Origin: Chlorokybus atmophyticus | Taxonomy: Eukaryota; Plantae; Mesostigma and Chlorokybus algae | Reading direction: 5' to 3' | DNA: 64,000 bases | NCBI GenBank assembly: GCA_009103225.1 | Contig: RHPI01003491.1 | Location: forward strand, 100,450 to 164,449 | Part shown: one piece after another, positions 7,252-60,100 of the stretch | Position numbering within the stretch: the stretch's first letter is position 1 | Layout: the number at the start of each line of letters is the position of its first letter | The notes under the pieces: generated by a model | What the model was told of the DNA's origin: nothing | The model's input: the letters and a program-made list of their open reading frames with translations, nothing else | Database searches by the model: none | Program-made: the position numbers and the translations under genes

Positions 7252-9296
7252 CACATGCATGTGTAGGTTAAAGTGTGTTGCAATTGTGTGTATAGCCGTG
7301 GTTGCTTCGGGACGACTCTGAAGAATTCAAAGATTGAAGGTTGAAAACTGCGAAGATTGATGGTTAAATACTATTTAGTAGTACTGAAGATTATGAAGAT
7401 TGGTGAGAAAGTTAAAAGCTTGGCAAAAGGCAAAGAAGGCGACTTGGAACTTTTGAAGCTGTCGAAAGTTGCAAGTTTTGAGAGGCTAAAGGCAACTTGA
7501 AGAATTGAGGCATGGACAATTTAAAGATCACATTTAAGCCACTCGAAGTTGACAACTATAGCACGTGGAGTATGAAGATGGAGTTGCTACTAATTTACAA
7601 AGATTTGTAGAAGTAATTTCAAAATACGTCAAGACAAGGTGCCTACCAGAGAAGGAAGTGTCTGGGCGACACAAGGAAGGAAGGCATTAGCCTTGATAGG
7701 CTTGAAAGTTGCGAAGCATCTGCTGGTGATGGTGAAAGAATGCAGCACCGCGAAGAAGCTGTGGTTGAAGTTAAAGAGCCACTTCAAGTCGTGCATGGCC
7801 AGAAGGCTACAGCTAAGATCAGAACTCAACTCGTTGCAAATGTTTAGCTGGGAGCCAATTAACAAGTTTGTAGCGCGGGTGAAAGCGTTATTGAAAGACT
7901 TGTTGGGTGTTGGCCATGAGCTCAAGGAAGTTGAGGTGGTGTGGGCTGTGCTCTCAAGCTTGCCCACCGAGTACAGAGTGGTCGTCACTATATTGGAGTC
8001 GACAATGGAAGAGTTGTCGCTGGACGGGGTGACATCGAGGCTTGAAGAACGACGCTTGAAGAAGGATGAAGAACTTGAGATTGGAGCATCGCCCGGAGGT
8101 GTGGCGTTTGCGACTTCAAAGGGTTTGGAAAAAGGGCGCCCAAGGCAGCAACAGAGAGTGTTGGCACTGCAGGGAGCATGGCCAGTTCAAGTACAAGTGT
8201 CCCAAGTTGAAGAGGGCAAAGACTGGTGGTGAGGTGAAAGCAATGGCGTTGCACGCATCAGAAGAAGAAGCAAATTATGTTGGGTGGGTGTTGGACTCGA
8301 GAGCTACAAGGCATCTCACAAATGACAGAAGCAAGCTTAGCAACTATACTCCTCTAACGAAGCCAGTGACGGTGGACTTTAGCACCAGGGAGATGTGCAT
8401 CTCCGATGCAAGGTTGGGAGTGAAGTGACGAAAGTTGTGCTCAAGGATGTACTGCATGTGCAAATTTGTTCTCGGTGCATATGGCCACGAGGGTTGGCGC
8501 AAGTGCGATGTTTGACATGAACAAGGCGAGGATTGTACTTAAAGGTGTCACACAGCTGGTCGGCATCAACAAGGGTGGACGCTACTACGTAGAGGAGGAC
8601 GGGGCACAGAAGATGGTTGCTGCTATGGCAAGAGTGGTTGAGAAGACATTTAAGACACCACATTGTCCAAGCAACAAAAAGGCACGAAAGGTTGTTGTGA
8701 CGGAAGCTCAGAGCTCGTGGGAGCTGCAAGAAGCTACGAGCAAGTGCTTGAAAGTAAAATGCCGAAGGTGGTGAAGAACGAAGTCAAAGCTATTACTGAA
8801 GACAAACGCTCTGTCAAAGGAAGACAGGTGCGGTAAGTAAAGGGCGGAAATGCGCATGTGCAGCAAGTACATGTGACAAAGAGCAAGCTGGAGCTTAAGC
8901 TTGCGGCCGACCCCTGTCCTATCCTACTTAAACATGCGACAAAAGTAATCTTGAGGTATGAAGCTTTAGGGACAATGTAACTACGCTTGGGATTCCGTAC
9001 CAATTATGTGCTAGGATAAGAGGAGTTTGTATCTAAGCTCCCTTCTTAATTGATGAGTAGTAGAAGCGAACTGACGGAAAAAGGCCGATGATAACAAGGA
9101 CTTCAAGATGAACAGGTTTCAAGTGTTGATGGGAAGCATGGAGGTGTTGGATCACGAAGAGCTTAAAGGCCGGGCTTTAATGGTCGCGCACGAGAAGAAG
9201 AAGGTCGTCAAGAAGAGAAGCAAGGAGCGCGTGGGAGTTCACCATGCGTGAGTGATGCAGGAGCAAGCGGTAAAGGTCAAGCTGCCCGCGTGGGAG

Positions 9297-15244: not shown

Positions 15245-16886
15245 TTATTGGTGACGGCATGGTTCATATTCTCGAAGCTCTGTTTGCCTTCCTGCTGATG
15301 CATCAGACAGGCTTCGTTCCTGCGTGGGTTCAATGCGCGTACAGCCACTCTGTTTGGGCAGCAAAAACAATGCATTGGTTAGCACCATGTCATGTGTGTA
15401 TGACCGATGTCTCGCCCCCTTCTGTGAGACAGGTGGCGGCTTCGACGGCACCAATGCCGTTGGCATGTTACTGACAAGCTCGTCACACAAACGCACCTCC
15501 CAGGCCAGATCGCCAGAGGTGGCCGGCACTTTGCGAGGGAGGTCAGACGCTGTATACATTTGTATGTGAGAGAGAGTGAGAGAAAATAATTAGTAATAAA
15601 GTGCTTTTACGCAACGCACCTTCTGCACCTTCTTGTCGCTCTTCTGCCTTGTTACATCCAACGCCACATTGCCCAAACTCCTCTGGCTCTTCCTGCTTTA
15701 CTACAAATTCTTTATCCGCCTCATTTTCCTCCTCTTCATCCATGTGTACGCGTGTCTTTGTCGAGTGCACACCCGCCCTTGCCTTATAGATGCGATCCAA
15801 CGTGATTGGCAGACCGAGCGCAAGCTCCCTCTCAGCGCGGTCCACCACCCGCACGGCTTCCTCGTGTGTGAGGCAACAGCCGACATACAACGGCTTCTTG
15901 TTGATGTAGATCTGCACTTGCCATCTGTGATAGTTCTTCTGCCACGTCACGCCAACCCGGCGTGGAGGCGCCTCCTCCGCCCTGCCCTCAGTCCCTCCTC
16001 CTCCCCGCAGTGTTGTGGTGTTTGCTTTTGACATGCACGTGGCTGCAGACTGCTTTCCCTTGTCGGCAGTGCCTCGGTGACCTGCAAGCACAAAGACGTC
16101 CCAATCACGCAGTGGGGATCTTGTGCCACAATGCCACATTCAAACGCTGACTCAGCGTTTGACATTCACTTCATTGGATGAAGTGAATCTGATGCAGGGA
16201 ATGGTTAAATGCAACGACATTTTGAAACGGAACACACCTTGTTCCTGTGCTTCGGCATCCTGCTCTTGCTCATCCTCAGCCTTCTCCTCGTCTTCCTCAC
16301 CTCCTTGTCTCCCTGCCGTGCTGACCCCATGTGCTGGCCTGGCAGCATTCCCATCCTTCTTATGCCTCTTCATGGTGGGCGTGGCTGAAAGGTGTTTGCG
16401 CTTCCGTGCATTGGCTTTGCCATCTGCATGGCATCTAGCTTAGAAGCATGTTGCATCCAGTCCAGCATTTCTGCACATCTGCATGCACGCGCTGCTGCAC
16501 GCACGCGTGCACCCACACCGACCCACCCACTCACCCCTCAAACACAGATGCGCACGCAGACACGCTCTCAAGCATGCACTGCCGCGCACAGAATATGGCA
16601 AGCTTATACAAAGGACAATGTACCCTACTACATACCATACCACAACGCGATACCCTACTTGCACCACAGCTGTGCCATATGCACGCACGTGCATATCGCA
16701 CCTTCGTGCGAAGCGTGCATACGCACTGTAGTTGTACGATCCATGTTGTCCATCTGTGGCAGAATGCGTGCCTCTGCAGTGCTCCGCTCCTTGTCGCCAA
16801 TAAGGGTTGCTTTATCACACTGATGGCCGTCTGCAGAGAAAGGTCTATATGTTGGAAAGGTGTATACACATACGCGCGCTCCCCCC

Positions 16887-16968
<82 letters not shown>

Positions 16969-19900
16969 TGCATCAGAGTGGCACAACTTAAGGCACCTTC
17001 TTCATCCTCTTCTGTCTCTCCAAGTTCAGTACCACAACGCCCAAGTTCATCCTGCTCTTCACTCTTCACCACCACTTCGTCCTCTTCCTCCGTCGCCTCC
17101 TCGTCATCCAAGTGTATGCATGTTTTGGCTGGCTTAACCGCCCTTGCGTATCGATCCAACGTGATGGGCAGGCCGAGTGCTGCCTCCCTCATGGCACGGT
17201 CCATTGCGCGTGCGGCCTCCTCGTGTGCATGGTATCTGCCAACATACAGGTTCTTGCCATTGACGTTTATGTGCGCTCGCCATATGTGATCCCTCTTGTT
17301 CCATGTCACGCCCATCCGTCGGGTAGGCGCCTCCGTTTTTGCGCCGTCCGTCCTTCCTCGCAGTCTTGTTGTGCTGGCTTTTGATGTGCACGTGGCTGCG
17401 ATCTGTTGTTTGCGCTTGCTGCGCGCACTGGTGCGGCAACCTGCACAGACATCCCAGTCATATATTGTTGGAGCAGTGCAGCCCGCGTGTAACATCACAG
17501 CCAGTAGCAGTCGCAATGCGTGCAAATGGTCTGGAGTGGAACACACCTTGTTCTTTTGCTTGGGCTTTCATGCTGGAAGGACAACGATCTGCTACGTGTG
17601 GTAGTCCAAGCACGGCCTCCTCCTCCTCGTCCTCCTCTTCCTCCTCCGAGGAGTCCTGCTCCTCGGCTTCACTGTCTTCCTCCTCACTCTGACCAAGTTT
17701 TGCTCTAGCCTTTGCTGCTTTGTGCCTTCGCTCTTGCGTAATCGGCAGGCCGAGCAGTTTTTCCCTCTCAGCGCGCTCTCTCGCGCAGACAGCCTCCTCA
17801 AATGTATGGTAGGCTCCAACGTACACATACTGGCGGTTCGCACTGATTTGCACTTGATAGCAGCCAGCTCTAAACCTTACGCCAGCTCGGTGGTGGCGAG
17901 GAGCCGTTCCGCCCTCTGCGGGTGGCATCCATGAGTTGCTTGTCGTTCTTGCGTTTGTTGAATGTGGTGCCTAAATGCGCACCTATGTAAGCGTGTGCAT
18001 GCAGGCACGCCTGAGCACCCATATATGCTTACACGCAACAGCATGGGCACATGCAAACGCTTGTACCCGTATGCACAAGCATTACGCACACAAATGCACG
18101 CACATACGCTCGTACGTGCATGCCTATGCAGACACACGCATGCACACCCCGGCCTGAGCGCACACACACCTTTTCCCTCGTCTTCCTCTTCCTCCACTTC
18201 TTCGTCCGATGCGGGCTCAGATTGGATAATATGCTGAAGTATTCGTAGCTTGAGCTCCTCCTCCTCCTGCTCTTCCTCCTCCTCTGCCTCACCTCCCCGC
18301 CTGCCTGGCGTGTTGACTATGCGTGCCAGCCTGGCAACCTTCCCATCCTTCTTGAAAGCCCGGTCCAACGTGATCTTCACGCCAAGTGCTCGTTCCTTCT
18401 CAGCTCGTTCCCTCGCCCGCACGGCTTCTTCGTATGTCACGTAGCGCCCCACATACAATCGCTCGTTATTGGCTCTGATGTGCACGCGGTAACGGTAGCT
18501 TTTCTTGCACCACGTCACACCCAACCGGCTTCTAGACAACTCCCGCCCTCTCCACCTCATACCAGCGCCTTTTGCTGGAGGAAGCACCTCACGCTGAGTG
18601 CGCTTGGGTAAATTGTTGCCAGCATCTATGCGCACGAACTATTCAGTGCCACAAGTGATAGGTATTACCACTATACGATGACATGCACACACTGTACCGT
18701 GTTCTGCTTTGCAATCTTCATCATCATCTTCAGAACTAGAACTCAAAAGGCTTGCAGCTGCTTGCAGTACAGCTTGCTTCTCCTCCTCCTCATCGTCATC
18801 ATCTTCATCCTCCTTCTCTTCCTCACTTCCGTTGACACAATGTTTTTCTGCTCTTTCTGTTCTCGTCGCCAGTGGTGCTGTCTGCCCCTTCTCTGTGTTG
18901 CGCGCACAATCGAGTGTGATGCTGAGTCCACGCTTGCGCCTTCTCTCCGCACGCTCTCCCGCAAGCACGGCCTCCGCATGCTTGCGGTAGCAGCCGACCA
19001 GCAGCTGCTTGCCGCTTACATAGATGTGTGTGCAGAACATGCGTGATGTCTTCGACCACGTCACGCCAAATCGGTGGTGGTGCGGAGGAGGGCGCAACGC
19101 AGCCTTTGCCTTGATCTTGGTTCCTCCTCGCTCTTGCAAGACTTGCCCCCGCCTGTCCGTGGTGTTGGCTCGCCGAACGATGGTGGGCGTGGCTGGAAGG
19201 TGTTTGCGCTTGCGTAGGTTGGCTTCGTCATCTGCACAGACACGCATGCACAAGGTTGCTGTAGACTATGCCGAAAGAGGTGGTCAATGCATGCACTCTT
19301 TCGCATTCACTTTGAAAGCATGTGCACGTACATAGAACGCTGCATTGCATACGCTTACATGCGCTTGCAGGCACATGCTCTCAATGCAGTTGCATGACAC
19401 GCAATTGCACACGCATGCGCATGCATACACGCACGGGTGCCTCAGAGTTTGACGTTGCTCACATGGTATACCACACCATACCACGTCATACCATACCCGC
19501 ACCACACATCAACGCCATATGCCATTACTTGTGAACTGCTCACCTTCACGCAATGCCTGCATTCGCACAGCAGTGGTACCGGCTGTGGTGTCCCTCAGTG
19601 GTGTAATGATAATGTGTGCCTCTGCAGCGCTCTGCTTCTTGTCGCCGCACAGGGTTGCATTGACACACTCATAGCCGTCTGCAGACCAGGGGCTACGTCA
19701 ACAAGGTGTACACACACACACTCACGCATGCACACGAAGAGGGCGGAAGAGGGAGAGCGAGCGAGCGAAGTAGAGCGCGAGCACGTGCGTGTGAGAAAGA
19801 AAGTGGTTGTACACAATGCACCTTCTTCGTGTTCCGCTTCTCTCTGGTTGCATCTCACGCCACAACACCCAATTCCCTCGTGCTCATCCTTCACCACAAC

Positions 19901-22575
19901 TTTCTCATCTTCCTCCACCTCCTGACTATCCTCCTCTTCGTCCATAAGTACGTGTCTCTTCACGTGCGCACCACCCCTTGCCTTGGATGGACCCACTGTG
20001 ACGGGCAGGCCAAGCGCGTGCTGCCTCTCTGCGCGGTCCATCACGCGCGCGGCCTCCTCGTGCGTGCAGTAGCTGCCGAGGTACAGCAGCTTGCTGCCAC
20101 TGATGCCAATCTTCACTTGCCAAAAGCACTTCCTCTTGTTCCATGTCACGCCGACCCGGCGGGGAGGCTCCTCCTCCCGGCCGTCCTCTCCGCCCACCTT
20201 CTCACCTCCTCCTGCACGCAGTCTTGTTGTGTTTGCTTTTGATGCAAGAGTCGCCGCTTGTACTTGACCGTGGTGCCTTGGCAACCCGAAACATATACAA
20301 GAAGTCGGATCATGCAAGTATGACACAGTTGTGAAAAGTTGTGCAGTTGCATACAGACAATTATGAGAGTGCAGTGAACGGTATTGTGGGACGGTTTTCA
20401 AGCTTGGGAAGTGCAATATCAACCCAGTAGCAGGCGCGACTCTGGGCAATGCATGAAACAGTTTGCAACGGAACATACCTTGTCCCTTTCCATGGGCTGT
20501 CAGCTTGGAAGGATGTCTGTGAGCACTTTTTGAATATGTGATGTTTGCCGCTTCCTCCTCCTGCTCATCTTCTCTACTGTCGTCCTCCTCACTCTGACCA
20601 ACCTTTGCTGCTTTGTGAGCTCGCTCTTGTGTGATCGGCAGGCCGAGCAATCTCACCCTCTCGGCGCGCTCCCGCGCAGGCAGCCTCCTCAAACGTGCTG
20701 TAGGCTCCAATGTACACTTGCTGGCGGCATGCCGTAATTTGCACTTGATGGCAGCCACCTCTTCGCCTTACGCCGGCTCGGTGGCGAGGCGCTTTCCCGC
20801 CCTCTGCGGGTGGCATCCATGAGTTGCCTGATATTGTGTCTGCGTGTGGTTGGTTTTGTGCCTACATGCGCATATACACACGCATGTATGCTCAATCGCA
20901 CAACGCGCATGCACACACAGACACACATGCACACGCAAGGGTACGGGCACGCACGCTTGCCCGCATAAGCAACTGCGTGCCCACACACCTTCTCCCTTTT
21001 CCTCTAATGTGGGCCTGGAGGCAATAAAGCGCCTCAGTTTTTGTCGCTTGGGCTCCTCTGCGGCCTGCTCTTCCTCCTCGTACTCGTCGTCGTCCTCCTC
21101 GTCTTCTTCACCTCCCCACCTCCCTGGCGTATTGACTACATGCGTCGGCCTTGCAACATCATGACTCCCGTCCTTCGTGTATCTTCGGTCCAGCGTAATC
21201 TCCAGGCCGAGCGCGCGTTCCTTCTCAGCTCGTTCCCTTGCGCGCACAGCTTCGTCAAATGCCACATAGCCTCCCACGTACAAGCACTTGCCGTTTGCTC
21301 TAATGTGCACGCGGTAACGGTAGGTTTTCTTGCACCACGTCACACCCAAGCGGCCCTGAGATGACTCCCGCCCTCTTCGTCTCACACCGGCTCGCTTTAC
21401 TAGAGGAAGCACCTCACGCCGGGTGCACTTGCGTGAGTTGTAGCCCACATCTACGCGCATGGATCGTTCAGTGCCAAGTGGTAGGGGTTATCACTACACG
21501 TTGACATGCACACACTTTACCGTGTTCTGCCTCCCAATCTTCATCATCGTCTTCAGAACTTGAACTCATAGATACCGCGGCCTCTTGCAGTACAACTTGC
21601 TGCTGCGCCTCCTCCTCCTCCTCCTCCTCCTGCTCATCATCATCTTCCACCTCCTCTTCCTCTTCATCTCCCTCGAGACAACTTCTCATGGATCCGCCTG
21701 CTCTCGTCACCAGCGGTGCTCTCTGCTTGTCCTTCGTGTTGTACACGCGATCCAGTGTTATGTCGAGTCCATGCTCATGCTCCCTCTCCGCGCGCTCCCG
21801 CGCGAGCATAGCCTCCTCGTGCGTATGGTAGCAGCCCACTAACAGCTGCTTGCCGCTCACATTGATGTGTGTGCAGAACTTGCGCGCTGTCTTCGCCCAC
21901 GTTACACCAATGCGGTGGTGGCGAGGAGGAGGACGCGTTGAAGCCTTTGCCTTGCCGTAGGTTCCTCCTCGCTCTTGCGGAACGCGCCCCCGCCTCTTTG
22001 AGCTTGCATTGATTCTCCGCGCATGCAGGAGGGCGTTGCGCATGGCGAGAAGGTGTTTGCGCTTCCACGCGTTGGCTTTGCCATCTGCATAGACACGCTT
22101 GCTCAGTTTATCGGTTGCCATGCTGAGCGGATGTACTACATGTCGTTTTAGCATTGAACGTGCAAGGATGCTGTATGCAGTCCAGCGTCTACATATCAGC
22201 AGGCACGCATCCGTATTCACACATGCACACATGCACAAGCAAGCACATAGAATGTGCACGCAGTCACGTTCTTCAGCAGGCACATGCACACGTGCACAAG
22301 CACGCGCACAGAGTTCAGCAAACAAACGCAAGCATAGTGTACCACAGCAAACCATGCCGTACCGTACCCGCACCACGCATCCATGCTATGAGCACGCACC
22401 TGTGTATTGCGCACCTTCACGCAACTCCTGCATTGGTACAGCAGTGGTGCGGTGTGTGATGTCCGTCCACGGCAGGACGCGTGCCTTTGCAGCGCTCTGC
22501 TTGTCTCCGTGAAGGGTTGCATTGACACACTGATAACCATCTGCAGAAAAGAGGCTATGTTTGACAGGCGTACAC

Positions 22576-22653
<78 letters not shown>

Positions 22654-22654
22654 N

Positions 22655-22726
<72 letters not shown>

Positions 22727-24450
22727 TTGCAACACTGAGTGTTTGTACATGGCGCACCTTTGTTATCTTCTGGTCTTTCTCCTACCTCGTTGCATTCAAC
22801 GCCACATTGCCCAAACTCCTGAGGCTCTTCCTTCCTTTCGACAACTGCATCTTTCGCCTCACCTTGTTCTTCATCCATGTGTGTGCGTGTCTTCAAGCGC
22901 ACACCACCGCTTGCCTTTCTTCGATCCAACGTGATGGGCAGGCCAAGGGCGTGCTCCCTCTCTGCGCGGTCCATCACGCGCGCGGCCTCCTCGTGCGTGC
23001 GGTAACTGCCGAGGTACAGCGGCTTGCTGCCGCTGATGCCAATCTTCACTTGCCAACTGCATTTCCTCTTGTGCCATGTCACCCCCTGGCGGGGAGGCGC
23101 CTCCTCCCTGCCCTTTGTTTTGTTTGCTGTTGCTGCATCAGTGGCCGCGGGCTCCTTGCCTGCGGTGGTCAAGCGCTGTGTTGTGGTGTGGTGTGTGTGT
23201 GTGTGTGGTGGTGGTGGTGTGTGTGTGTGTGTGGGGGGGGATGCGGTCTGAACTGCTGGTTGTGTGTGTTTGACAGTGNNNNNNNNNNNNNNNNNNNNNN
23301 NNNNNNNNNNNNNNNNNNNNNNNNNNNNNNNNNNNNNNNNNNNNNNNNNNNNNNNNNNNNNNNNNNNNNNNNNNNNNNNNNNNNNNNNNNNNNNNNNNNN
23401 NNNNNNNNNNNNNNNNNNNNNNNGTGAGAGAGAGAGACATGAAGACACTTTCCTCTTGTCTGCAAAGTAGCACCTCTGACACTGTTCCCCACCTGCAAGC
23501 TGCTGTCTTGGTTGTGTCTGCCAATGTCGAGCTGATACGGCATGAACAGAATGCACGTCCAGATCTGCGTTATCATCATTGCATGTTGGCGAAAGCAGGC
23601 TGGCAGTCCCAATCTCACTTTCGTCCAATGCACTCTGACTCAGGACCCCTGCACAAGAACAGAAGAACAGCCATGAACACGCACACACACAAGCGCTCAT
23701 GCGTGCACACACACGCACGCTCGTGCACACACACTCCAAAAAGCAAGCAAGGTAAAGCTCGCTTGCAACGACTTGCAAGCGAGCTTCACCTTGTAAGCAG
23801 TGGAAGTACTCCGCGCGCACCGAGGCGGGCAAGTTATCGTCGCAATCGTTGGCAACCAGCTCTCCGCTCACAGCTATGTGCTAATGCAACCCAGTGCATT
23901 GCATGCATGTGCATGTTGTAAGGCCACAACATAAGAGCACACAGGTGACTGCAGGACTGCATAACATCCACCAGCACGAAGTGTACAGGGGTTCAAAACA
24001 ACAGGTTACACTACCTCCAACAGCTTGGCCATGCACAGCTTCCCCTGCCTTTCTGGGCGAGGAAAATGCCTCATGCCTCATGCTCTTTTGTGCGGTCATC
24101 ATGCAGTCATCTGCTTTGACAGAAACAAGTTGTAGTAACCAAGTTCAAAAGAACGGCAAGCACCAACAGCTCCAGTTCTTTGCAAGTACAATTGCTGCTT
24201 TGCTTGTGAGGGCATGGGCAGCAGGAAGGTAGCTGTTCACCCAATGATTGTCAACGCTGCTTACAACATGGCAAAGGCAGAAAGTCGCACTGCTTACGTG
24301 TGAAACAATTCGTGTTGAAGGACACAATGTGGCTACCTTGCAAGCGCAGACATGTCGCCGCCGCTGGCGGTGATCTTGCAGTAAGCTCTGGGCGAACAGA
24401 CGTGCTGCTTGCAAAACACACCGCTTGCCGCTGTATAGGCATGAATTAAT
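15245..24450 (-). CDS. Multi-exon gene encoding ten AP2-like DNA-binding domains, each followed by an acidic tract; built by intragenic tandem duplication of a ~2.9-kb exon block; 5' end uncertain
   Basis: Phase-1 AG/GT exons: 23159-22758, 22540-22415, 22084-21521, 21450-20989, 20803-20479, 20211-19822, 19678-19544, 19231-18698, 18625-18170, 17915-17547, 17440-16997, 16830-16702, 16423-16238, 16081-15620. All are multiples of 3 except 20803-20479. Motif GVTWxK...WxVxI...LYxGxYxTxEEAxRxxxRA. Further candidate exons at 23.5-24.45 kb and 15.25-15.55 kb. Confidence 0.78.
16890..16963. repeat. Intronic (GA)n microsatellite
   Basis: GA run in the A-E intron; the paralogous intron has a longer run at about 22577-22722. 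Confidence 0.95.
22577..22722. repeat. Intronic (GA)n microsatellite with a single-N join
   Basis: GA run; N at 22654. Confidence 0.95.
23279..23423. other. Assembly gap
   Basis: Run of N. Confidence 1.
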
Positions 24451-29118: not shown

Positions 29119-31159
<2,041 letters not shown>

Positions 31160-57192: not shown

Positions 57193-60100
57193 TCAGCTGT
57201 GTCCGCAACCTGTTAAACTTTGTATCCTTAGCCAGTCATCACCCACCAACCCTCTACCCAACAACTGTTCAATGCGAATCCCCTGCAGATGCCCTGAGCC
57301 AGGCGCTTGCACAGGCAGCTGCAACTTCATGCCTGGAGTTGGAAGCTCGATCTCGGTAAGACGAATGCAGGCAGCTGCTATCATTTGAAACACATTTGAT
57401 TTCACTTCATCACACCCCGACACATTTAGACTCTGCAACCTTTGCAGCCGGCTCAAAGGCACCCCGCGCACGCCTTTGCAACACGCCAGTGATAAATGTT
57501 CAAGACCTTTGCAATGGTGGACCATACTGTTCAAGCTGATGTCGGTCAAGCCGAAACAGCCCGCGAGCGATAGCTTACGCAAGTCAGGGTTGGATGCAGC
57601 AATCAACTCAATGTCGTCATCACGCAAGAAGGGTCTTCGCACCACTGATAAAGATGTCAAGCCAGAGAAGTGGCAGAGAGCTTTGTCGGTCCAGTTTGTA
57701 ACTGAGCCGCCAATGCGCACATCGCGCAGATGTCGGCAGCTGGCAATGTCCCTGATGCCGATATCGCTCAAACCCCGACACGCCACAAGTGATATCCGCT
57801 CAATGCGTGGGCACGCTGTCGCTATCAGCTGCGCAATGTCGTCGGCTACATGGCATTGGTCGAGGCAAAGCTCCCTTATGGTCTTGCCAGAAGCAGCCAG
57901 CAAAGCTTTCAGGAAAGGTTGTGCGGATGCATAGCGGAGTGCAGACACATCCGCAACTGATACCGCCGTGAGGTTCATCCATAAACCTCGCGACAATCTA
58001 TGGGAGGCAACATCCAAAGCCAACTCGCTCACATTTCGGCATCCGGCAAGGGAAAGCCGTCGCAGGCGCGGAAAATGTGTCACGAACAGACACAAAGCCT
58101 GGTCGCCAATGTTGCAGCCCGAAACATCCAACTCCTCCAGTGGAAAAGACAACAAGTTGTCTTTGATGGAGGCATCAGCAACGCTCGCCAAAGCATACTC
58201 TTTGTTACCCTCTATAGTCTCTTCTCCAACACGGGAGCGCACGCCTCGCAGGTCACTGTGTTGGCCAGAAGCCAACGTAATGCTCTTGCCGTGCCAGTAA
58301 TCGTTCAAGCTCTGGAATGTTTGATCGGTCAATCGCAGAAGGCCGGAGATGTTGAGTGAGACCAGTTTCAGCGCCAAGTTGATGAGAAGGAAAGTGATAG
58401 TGTAGGGTCCAATCTGCGAACAGTTGCTCAGGTTGAGGCGTGTAAGAGACACGGCTGTTCTGGACATTACGATGATGTCGGCTTCGCTCACAGCTGTGCC
58501 AGACACATCCAACTCCTCCAAGAAAGCCAACTGCTTCACTACGGGTGTAATCCATTGCACAGCCCTGATAACAAGCGCGCGCACAACACGCACCCACAGC
58601 TTGTGTCAATGATGTATCAACTTGTATGGGTACAATGCATACAAGTGCACATGCTGCTCAAGCAACAGGCTCAAGAGCGCGTATGCACATCACAACAACA
58701 TGAGAGTCTCACCTGCAGCCAGCAATGCGCAAAACACGCAGAGTGCGCCATAGCTTGTGTGCGATGACAGTTAAGCCGTCATTTGTGATCTGTGATAGAC
58801 CGCGCAGCGACAGCGTGTCCAACTGCGCAGACATATGTTGCCATGTCAGTCAAGAAAGATACGGCGCAACAAACAGCACGCAACATCCCAGCATGCTATG
58901 AGATGCTCATGCATCTTGTCTCGGTGTTATAAGAACAAGGTAGCTGGTAGATGCGTGCATTGGTACATGCGTGAGGGTGTGCGCATGCATATACGCACAC
59001 ATACACGACTGCAACACTGGTAATAATTTTCACAAATTATAACAACCAAATGTAGCAACCAAGTGCACGTGTAATGCACTAAATTCACAAGCAACACCCA
59101 GCTCACCTCACAGCAGTACTCTGCAATATGCATAAGTGCAACATTCGTGACTGCACTGCATTGATCGAGCACAAGCGTGCGCAGACTCCCACACGCTTTC
59201 GCCATGGCGCAGGCTGATAAGTCCGTCAAAGGAGCTGAGGAAAGGTCTAGAAAGGTGATGTCCTTGCCAGCTGGCACTATGACTTGCCTAACAAGCTGGT
59301 CCATATCTATGTTCCAAAGCCCTCGCAGGCATAGCTGTCTGAGATTCATGCATTTGGAAAGAGGAAACAACAGTGAAGTGTCCAGCCAAGTGCACCCCGC
59401 AAAGCAGCAACATTGAATGCCCGCCTGTGCTGCAGCCCACTCGACCGCAGCGCGTGTTGCCGGAGAGTACTTGCTTACTGTTAGCTCTTGCGCTTGCGGC
59501 CACCTACCTGTTAACACCAGTCTGTTCCATTGACTGCATACCTGCGCAAACACTCGTCAATCGGCGATCACAAGATTGAGCACTTGTCTACTCAGGACGA
59601 ATTGCACGAACACCCATCACCGGTAAAGTTGTCCAGTTGCACACACACATGCTTTATGTCATAACAGCAGAACATTTTCTCAATTGCTTGGCAGTACTCC
59701 CAAACAGCAAAGCTTCAGGTTGAGTTCAAGCTTGCTGTTGGTTCACATAGCTCCTTGATGGGAAAACGGGCCAGATCCCGACACCTGGATTGTGCTCTTT
59801 TTCTAAGAAGTACAAAGCGAAGCAAAGGAAGCACCACATATTACTGAGAAGCAAAGCAAGTATAGCATAGATTGGATAGCAGCAACAACAAAATCTGACA
59901 AACAGCAACCAAACGTTAAGTATGATCCACCTTTTGACTTCAAGTGTGTGTGGAGCTCAGAAAACAGTACCGTTGTGCAAGCTGGACCATCAATTTGACA
60001 TGATTCAGCTTTTCTAATAGTGCAAATATGATACCCAACTCCACAACAGGTGAACCCCCTCGTGGTGGTCTCTGTGAACGGGGTGTGGGAGGACAGGCGA

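Follow-up and report, generated by a model that had tools for sequence, protein, structure and literature searches.

Land-plant members of the AP2/ERF family carry one or two AP2 domains, those of the two-domain AP2 subfamily being joined by a short linker that is conserved. Larger numbers have been described elsewhere: the green alga Coccomyxa has a protein with seven AP2 domains, CsuAP2-007 (PMC4982375; cited again in PMC7811268), and the large ApiAP2 proteins of apicomplexans each combine several AP2 domains that have diverged from one another and bind different motifs (PMC2965767). Here we describe a locus of Chlorokybus atmophyticus, an early-diverging alga related to the land plants, contained in a 64,000-nucleotide stretch of contig RHPI01003491.1 (hereafter the window), in which ten AP2-like domains are distributed across 14 exons of an array on the minus strand at 15245-23160. 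On balance it is probably a real poly-AP2 transcription-factor locus that was shaped by cassette duplication, and whose unannotated upstream block lies, or until recently lay, in the same transcription unit as the rest.

Stop-free stretches between 15.2 and 23.2 kb of the minus strand hold ten copies of a 65-residue motif, which starts with R-x-G-V-T-W, has a central L-Y-V-G and an EEA-type helix, and closes with an ITLDR-type end. Relative to the copy termed A3 the other copies show 44-61% identity, and 11 columns are invariant. In the 5' to 3' direction of the gene the domains are ordered A1 D1 C1 B1, A2 D2 C2 B2, A3, A4, at the following positions:

22909-23106, minus strand: AP2 domain A1
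21735-21935, minus strand: AP2 domain D1
21173-21370, minus strand: AP2 domain C1
20609-20798, minus strand: AP2 domain B1
19979-20173, minus strand: AP2 domain A2
18894-19094, minus strand: AP2 domain D2
18348-18545, minus strand: AP2 domain C2
17716-17910, minus strand: AP2 domain B2
17139-17336, minus strand: AP2 domain A3, the best Pfam match
15780-15977, minus strand: AP2 domain A4

The domains belong to a five-exon cassette (A, spacer, D, C, B) with a repeat period of 2.82-2.93 kb. The spacer exons S1-S3 (42-45 codons) come after A1, A2 and A3 respectively, and in the third block a remnant exon, R3, occupies the place of the absent D, C and B; it was left by deletion of these domains. 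An initial annotation made from the sequence had already called ten AP2-like domains, and all of them could be placed on the minus strand. Its further description of four AP2 subtypes plus a spacer forming a block of ~2.9 kb agrees with direct repeats that are spaced 2808-2933 bp apart and are 75-84% identical. The poly-Glu/Asp tract that it saw behind each domain recurs as an acidic tract after every domain of the array, and the four diverged β-sheet motifs it had singled out, WQKNYHRW, WAKTARKF, WCKKSYRY and VRFRAGCY, are located in A4, D1, C2 and B2.

The assignment of these modules to the AP2 family is supported at the levels of both sequence and structure. A3 on its own scores 36.7 bits against the Pfam model PF00847, above the gathering cut-off of 33.3 bits, and the profile check that the initial annotation had proposed for the spliced product is passed by the public protein model Chrsp41S05694 (42.4 versus 33.3 bits). 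The copies other than A3 either fall under the cut-off (E 0.001-0.01; A1, E=0.001) or have no individual match, and six of the nine domains tested reach E<1. A profile built from nine copies had WRI1 as its sole match among solved structures, over single domains. From subtype B, the most diverged, two residues of the first hairpin have been lost, and Pfam gives no match to this subtype by itself; in BLASTP searches B2 matches A3 at 1e-14. The structure model of B2 has a mean predicted local distance difference test (pLDDT) score of 79.5 and shows a three-stranded antiparallel sheet (residues 11-14, 17-24 and 27-34) on one helix (37-52). In a Foldseek search of the PDB its best eight matches were all AP2 domains of TEM1, WRI1 and AtERF1 (7ET4, 7ET5, 7WQ5, 1GCC), with probabilities of 0.99-1.00, template-modelling (TM) scores of 0.57-0.62, and E-values that are weak for this 65-residue model (0.015-0.11). 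Subtype B is thus also predicted to adopt the AP2 fold.

Much of the array is already represented in public data. Chrsp41S05694 (P0001; 1016 residues; EukProt EP00898_Chlorokybus_atmophyticus_P005702; jgi/Chlat1/6132/Chrsp41S05694) was the top match when 1.84 billion representative sequences were searched with the domain profile. It maps residue for residue, at 100% identity, to ten exons of the window from the middle of A2 to the stop codon at 15245, and this exact mapping confirms C. atmophyticus as the source organism. The exon chain of the model is A2 (in part), S2, D2, C2, B2, A3, S3, R3, A4 and the last exon; hence the annotators already regard blocks 2 and 3 as a single spliced gene with six domains. 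Five of these domains are whole, beginning at residues 165, 325, 410, 567 and 798 with acidic or low-complexity stretches between them, and one is partial. The first exon (20041-19822) opens with a start methionine (ATG 20041) that lies within the AP2 helix of A2 and, since the model starts inside a domain, it is 5'-truncated. In the genome paper 9,198 and 9,066 of ~9,300 models are transcript-supported in its two genomes (PMC7027972), a base rate that is not specific to this locus. We also considered separate short genes, one per open reading frame (ORF); these are ruled out by the absence of start and stop codons from the exons and by the public model, in which the exons are spliced together.

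The exons are as follows (lengths in nucleotides, nt):

22758-23159, minus strand: exon A1, 402 nt, with an alternative in-frame donor at 22863
22415-22540, minus strand: spacer exon S1, 126 nt, with a (CT)72 tract in the preceding intron
21521-22084, minus strand: exon D1, 564 nt, with a basic N-terminal part and a long acidic tail
20989-21450, minus strand: exon C1, 462 nt, with an alternative in-frame donor at 21112
20479-20803, minus strand: exon B1, 325 nt (a length not divisible by 3), carrying a 2-nt deletion near 20673-20675
19822-20262, minus strand: exon A2, 441 nt or less, depending on the choice of acceptor
19544-19678, minus strand: spacer exon S2, 135 nt
18698-19231, minus strand: exon D2, 534 nt
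18170-18625, minus strand: exon C2, 456 nt; the public model takes the earlier donor at 18293
17547-17915, minus strand: exon B2, 369 nt
16997-17440, minus strand: exon A3, 444 nt; the public model takes the donor at 17063
16702-16830, minus strand: spacer exon S3, 129 nt, with (CT)38 in the preceding intron
16238-16423, minus strand: remnant exon R3, 186 nt, made of the start of a D exon and the tails of C and B exons
15620-16081, minus strand: exon A4, 462 nt
15245-15549, minus strand: last exon, 101 codons; its TAA stop (15245-15247) overlaps AATAAA

All 14 array exons have an AG acceptor and a GT donor in phase 1, A2 by way of substitute AGs, and 13 of the 14 have lengths that are multiples of 3, the exception being B1. 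This is the pattern of symmetric phase-1 exons that the initial annotation had reported, with the qualification for the A2 acceptor. The splice sites are canonical and conserved between the blocks. For the B exons the acceptors were taken from the public model (20803 in B1, 17915 in B2), which restores phase 1; the alternatives at 20827 and 17938 were dropped on account of a phase mismatch in B2. A second in-frame donor occurs before or inside the acidic tract in A1, C1, C2 and A3. In the exon model every donor ends in G and the junction codons begin with G, and because this holds at every phase-1 junction these codons can never be stops.

The introns between A and spacer exons carry microsatellites. 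The (GA)38 tract at 16889-16964 and the (GA)72 tract at 22578-22723 read as (CT)n in the sense of the gene, and occupy matching positions in blocks 3 and 1, ~35-60 nt upstream of the spacer-exon acceptors; the run in block 1 includes a single N at 22654. The corresponding intron of block 2 has a degenerate C/T-rich stretch alone (19737-19816). The long (CT)n runs might function as pyrimidine tracts of giant size.

Block 1 (A1, S1, D1, C1, B1) is unannotated. Its exons are 75-79% identical to those of block 2, and four of the five introns compared are at 57-66% identity, the 70-nt D-C intron being at 81%. Insertions and deletions between the two blocks are multiples of 3 in 12 of 13 cases in exons versus 7 of 17 in introns (Fisher p=0.007). 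The ~1,550 nt of block 1 exons contain no stop codon; in a neutral simulation with 12% change per site, run on the concatenated exon pieces, 0.04% of the replicates remained stop-free (P ~0.0004). The ratio of non-synonymous to synonymous divergence (dN/dS) between the blocks amounts to 0.20-0.22 for the D and C domains, as against 0.43-0.56 for the tails. When A3 and A4 are used as outgroups, A1 has accumulated 12 derived non-synonymous changes versus 21 in the annotated A2. Finally, block 1 retains five of five acceptors and five of five donors. The in-frame indels, the absence of stops, the low dN/dS, the unaccelerated A1 and the kept splice sites together indicate, at the level of sequence, that block 1 was preserved as coding exons through most of the period that followed its duplication (synonymous divergence, dS, ~0.7 in D and C).

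The A domains of the first two blocks show a separate feature: A1 and A2 differ by a dS of 0.26, versus ~0.7 for the D and C pairs. This suggests either gene conversion between A exons or a staggered history of duplication.

We favor a scenario in which a cassette of five symmetric phase-1 exons was duplicated in tandem with a period of ~2.85 kb, giving rise to two full blocks, a third block reduced by the loss of D, C and B to R3, and a final A exon. The upstream block would be unannotated coding sequence that is now, or was until recently, expressed as part of the Chrsp41S05694 transcription unit. The product is probably a nuclear protein, in which each AP2 module would contact DNA by its three-stranded sheet. 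The retention of different sheet residues in the four subtypes suggests that composite or clustered sites might be recognized, and the acidic tracts between the modules could serve as activating or self-inhibitory linkers.

Several observations weigh against an intact unit of this kind. B1 has suffered a 2-nt deletion in a short GA/CG-rich stretch within the helix of its domain, and if the exon were included the frameshift would lead to a stop ~70 codons into it. In A2, the ancestral acceptor is now CGG versus CAG in A3 and A4. These two lesions break the ten-domain frame, and a ten-domain product is impossible as assembled. In keeping with this, the proposal of the initial annotation that the short ORFs are exons of one spliced frame stands for the ten exons that Chrsp41S05694 joins at the inferred phase-1 junctions, but not for the array as a whole. 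In word searches neither the D1 nor the A4 exon retrieved transcript-derived protein fragments or short paralogues, and no annotated protein was found in such searches for the four upstream domains of block 1 or for the 5' exons; with Chrsp41S05694, the one spliced product used as a query, the search returned only the protein itself, and no annotated block 1 protein or long paralogue (559-1778 residues). The 5' exons in question are putative, drawn by splice-site logic across an assembly gap:

24337-24442, minus strand: putative first coding exon, with ATG at 24442 and a phase-1 donor, called from sequence
23790-23873, minus strand: putative 5' exon U0, 84 nt, AG/GT phase 1, likewise called from sequence
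23493-23648, minus strand: putative 5' exon U1, 156 nt, phase 1 on both sides, with a strong pyrimidine tract before the acceptor
23279-23423, strand not applicable: assembly gap, situated upstream of A1 in a putative intron or the 5' region, outside the repeat unit

No homologue and no annotation was found for the three putative exons, and Pfam matched no family to U1, as was also the case for the spacer exon and the last exon. The gap is separated by 118 nt from the A1 acceptor downstream of it (AG at 23161-23160), with a (CT)n run on one side and a (CA)n run on the other. As it lies between the 5' exons and A1, their connection depends on the scaffold join; none of the array exons crosses it, and the repeat homology stops near 23107-23160. 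A 438-residue ORF that passes through the gap (22555-23871) was discarded as an artefact of N being translated as X.

Beyond the deletion in B1 the original frame is still open up to the conserved phase-1 donor, and the lesion therefore looks recent. The assembly is Illumina-only, produced with SOAPdenovo and GapCloser and polished with Pilon (PMC7027972), which makes it more likely that the deletion is real than that it is an assembly error. A2 offers in-frame phase-1 AGs at 20262, 20256, 20235 and 20211, and the intron between B1 and A2 is enlarged to 216 nt, from 106, and is open in frame. Skipping of B1 would restore the frame and yield a nine-domain protein, judging from the exon phases; without such skipping there would be an upstream three-domain product and the annotated downstream one. 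The same region holds a 390-codon open frame (20767-19598, minus strand), which extends from the second half of B1 through the entire 216-nt intron into A2. Retention of this intron would keep the frame, and translation from an ATG near 20476 could give a product whose A2 domain is complete.

The alternative that survives best is that of two adjacent genes. The upstream gene would consist of the 5' exons, A1, S1, D1, C1 and a truncated B1, ending at the frameshift stop; the downstream gene would start near A2 and be either the annotated model or a somewhat longer form of it, with the ATG near 20476 as candidate start. The clustering of three lesions at the B1/A2 boundary (the 2-nt deletion, the change of CAG to CGG, and the growth of the intron from 106 to 216 nt) speaks for such a split, as do the start of the public model downstream of these lesions, the openness of frame 0 from 20767 to 19598, the lack of the conserved ITLDR-type domain end in A2, and the 21 derived non-synonymous changes in A2 as against 12 in A1. 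On the other hand, an annotated start inside an AP2 domain is typical of a truncated model, no poly(A) or promoter evidence came to light around the B1/A2 boundary, usable phase-1 acceptors are still present in A2, and A2 exceeds A1 in changes by a small margin. We hold two genes to be unlikely, while giving the idea real weight.

A further possibility is that block 1 is a silent, recently dead duplicate made of pseudo-exons, the sole functional gene being the annotated six-domain one. The frameshift in B1, the lack of annotation, and the failure of database word searches to find protein fragments fit this idea. However, the stop-free ~1,550 nt, the in-frame indels and the domain dN/dS of ~0.2 argue against it, as do the retention of all five acceptors and donors and the lack of acceleration on the A1 branch, and any inactivation must be recent relative to a dS of ~0.7; we judge it very improbable. 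That the locus is in part an assembly artefact, with a wrong copy number of the 2.9-kb tandem repeat, chimeric copies or a false 2-nt deletion, might be suspected from the short-read SOAPdenovo and GapCloser assembly (PMC7027972) and from the gap and single N in microsatellites beside and within the array, but hardly deserves credence, given that exon divergence between the copies is 16-25% and that of most introns is higher still, far above the level of collapse at k=85, and that the public protein model matches blocks 2 and 3 base for base.

Returning to the preferred single-unit locus, its architecture raises the question of how the exons might be used. Exon lengths are multiples of 3 in 13 of 14 cases and all junctions are phase 1, as cassette exons require; the donors also end in G, and whichever of the symmetric exons are joined, the frame is kept. 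Tuning by exon skipping, which the initial annotation had put forward, would be structurally possible. A bolder version would make the locus a combinatorial generator of transcription factors, in which regulated skipping yields proteins with varied sets of the four AP2 specificities; the (CT)n tracts before spacer exons and the in-frame alternative donors before acidic tracts would perhaps take part, and the frameshift in B1 would do no harm, this exon being skipped as a rule. We regard this version as distinctly doubtful; if true, it would be a rare case in which the set of DNA-binding domains is chosen by splicing. Independently of this, the locus shows AP2 modules multiplying through duplicated symmetric exon cassettes, with four sheet variants under purifying selection. 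It also puts right a public gene model whose start falls within a domain, so that ~1.9 kb of conserved coding exons on its upstream side are left out.

Other features of the window lie outside the array. An ORF at 29952-30527 (minus strand) encodes a glyceraldehyde-3-phosphate dehydrogenase NAD-binding domain (PF00044, 1.9e-31) and probably indicates the neighboring gene, located upstream and on the same strand. A copia-type gag is encoded at 7639-8229 (plus strand; PF14223, 1.5e-24), and leucine-rich repeats are found in ORFs at 57196-59553 (minus strand; LRR_4, 1.3e-16). A mobile-element origin of the repeat unit was rejected: no transposase or HNH domain was seen in it, and the retroelements of the window lie elsewhere.

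In terms of domain number the closest counterparts of the locus are found in green algae. The search with the domain profile recovered 8,843 proteins at E<=0.001, many with numerous matching stretches. By this profile Cymbomonas KAK3287254.1 (1828 residues) has 12-13 AP2 stretches, a metagenomic protein of 1641 residues has 11-14, Edaphochlamys KAG2500020.1 has 8-12, and Mesostigma Mv18901 has seven. Among the best profile matches are also bacterial proteins, such as Longibaculum muris WP_270525718.1 (P0010, P0167), and metagenomic ones, with 4-9 tandem AP2 domains. The Mesostigma viride gene has five annotated isoforms (P0005, P0162-P0165) with seven, six or five AP2 domains, in which alternative N- or C-terminal ends remove the first or the last domain; by analogy, these might offer a loose precedent for domain number being set by transcript structure. 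The statement of the initial annotation that plant proteins typically have one or two AP2 domains is accordingly sound for land plants but not for green algae, where proteins with seven domains have been published (PMC4982375) and ones with ~12-13 occur in databases; the annotators' own model of Chrsp41S05694 is itself a green-algal product with more than two. Many-domain AP2 proteins were thus already on record in green algae, and the locus adds another; on present data it is an unexceptional, if well-described, case among the multi-AP2 genes of algae.

The Chlorokybus locus and the multi-AP2 proteins of Cymbomonas, Edaphochlamys, Mesostigma and Coccomyxa share the presence of many AP2 domains in one protein, but none of the latter is orthologous to it. 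No close relative of the locus appeared in the sequence searches run, and per-domain scores are 8-45 bits for foreign proteins versus 92-117 bits for the five whole domains of Chrsp41S05694. These pairwise scores were used in place of a tree of 402 AP2 domains, in which the common ancestor of the domains of the locus spanned 85 tips with a support of 0.62. Since the best match of each of the nine domains tested is another domain of the locus, the array is an expansion of the Chlorokybus lineage by cassette duplication.

With the land-plant AP2/ERF proteins (PF00847; AtERF1 1GCC, WRI1 7WQ5, TEM1 7ET4) the Chlorokybus domains have in common the family and the fold, including the EEAA-type helix and a strand 1 that begins with arginine-glycine-valine. 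In strands 1-2 the residues are similar to the GV[ST]W-x-K type, a form common beyond the land plants, and most copies stay under the Pfam cut-off. Chrsp41S05694 lacks the arrangement of two repeats and a conserved short linker; its domains start ~90-230 residues apart, with acidic tracts between them. The apicomplexan ApiAP2 proteins are likewise large and contain several AP2 domains each, diverged from one another, but belong to another lineage without detectable orthology to the locus, and are not known to have their domains laid out as duplicated exon cassettes. As a functional analogy alone, tandem C2H2 zinc-finger arrays are also rows of small DNA-reading modules that grow by tandem duplication and differ in their contact residues; however, their fold is unrelated and they usually occupy one exon, whereas each Chlorokybus module sits on its own symmetric exon.

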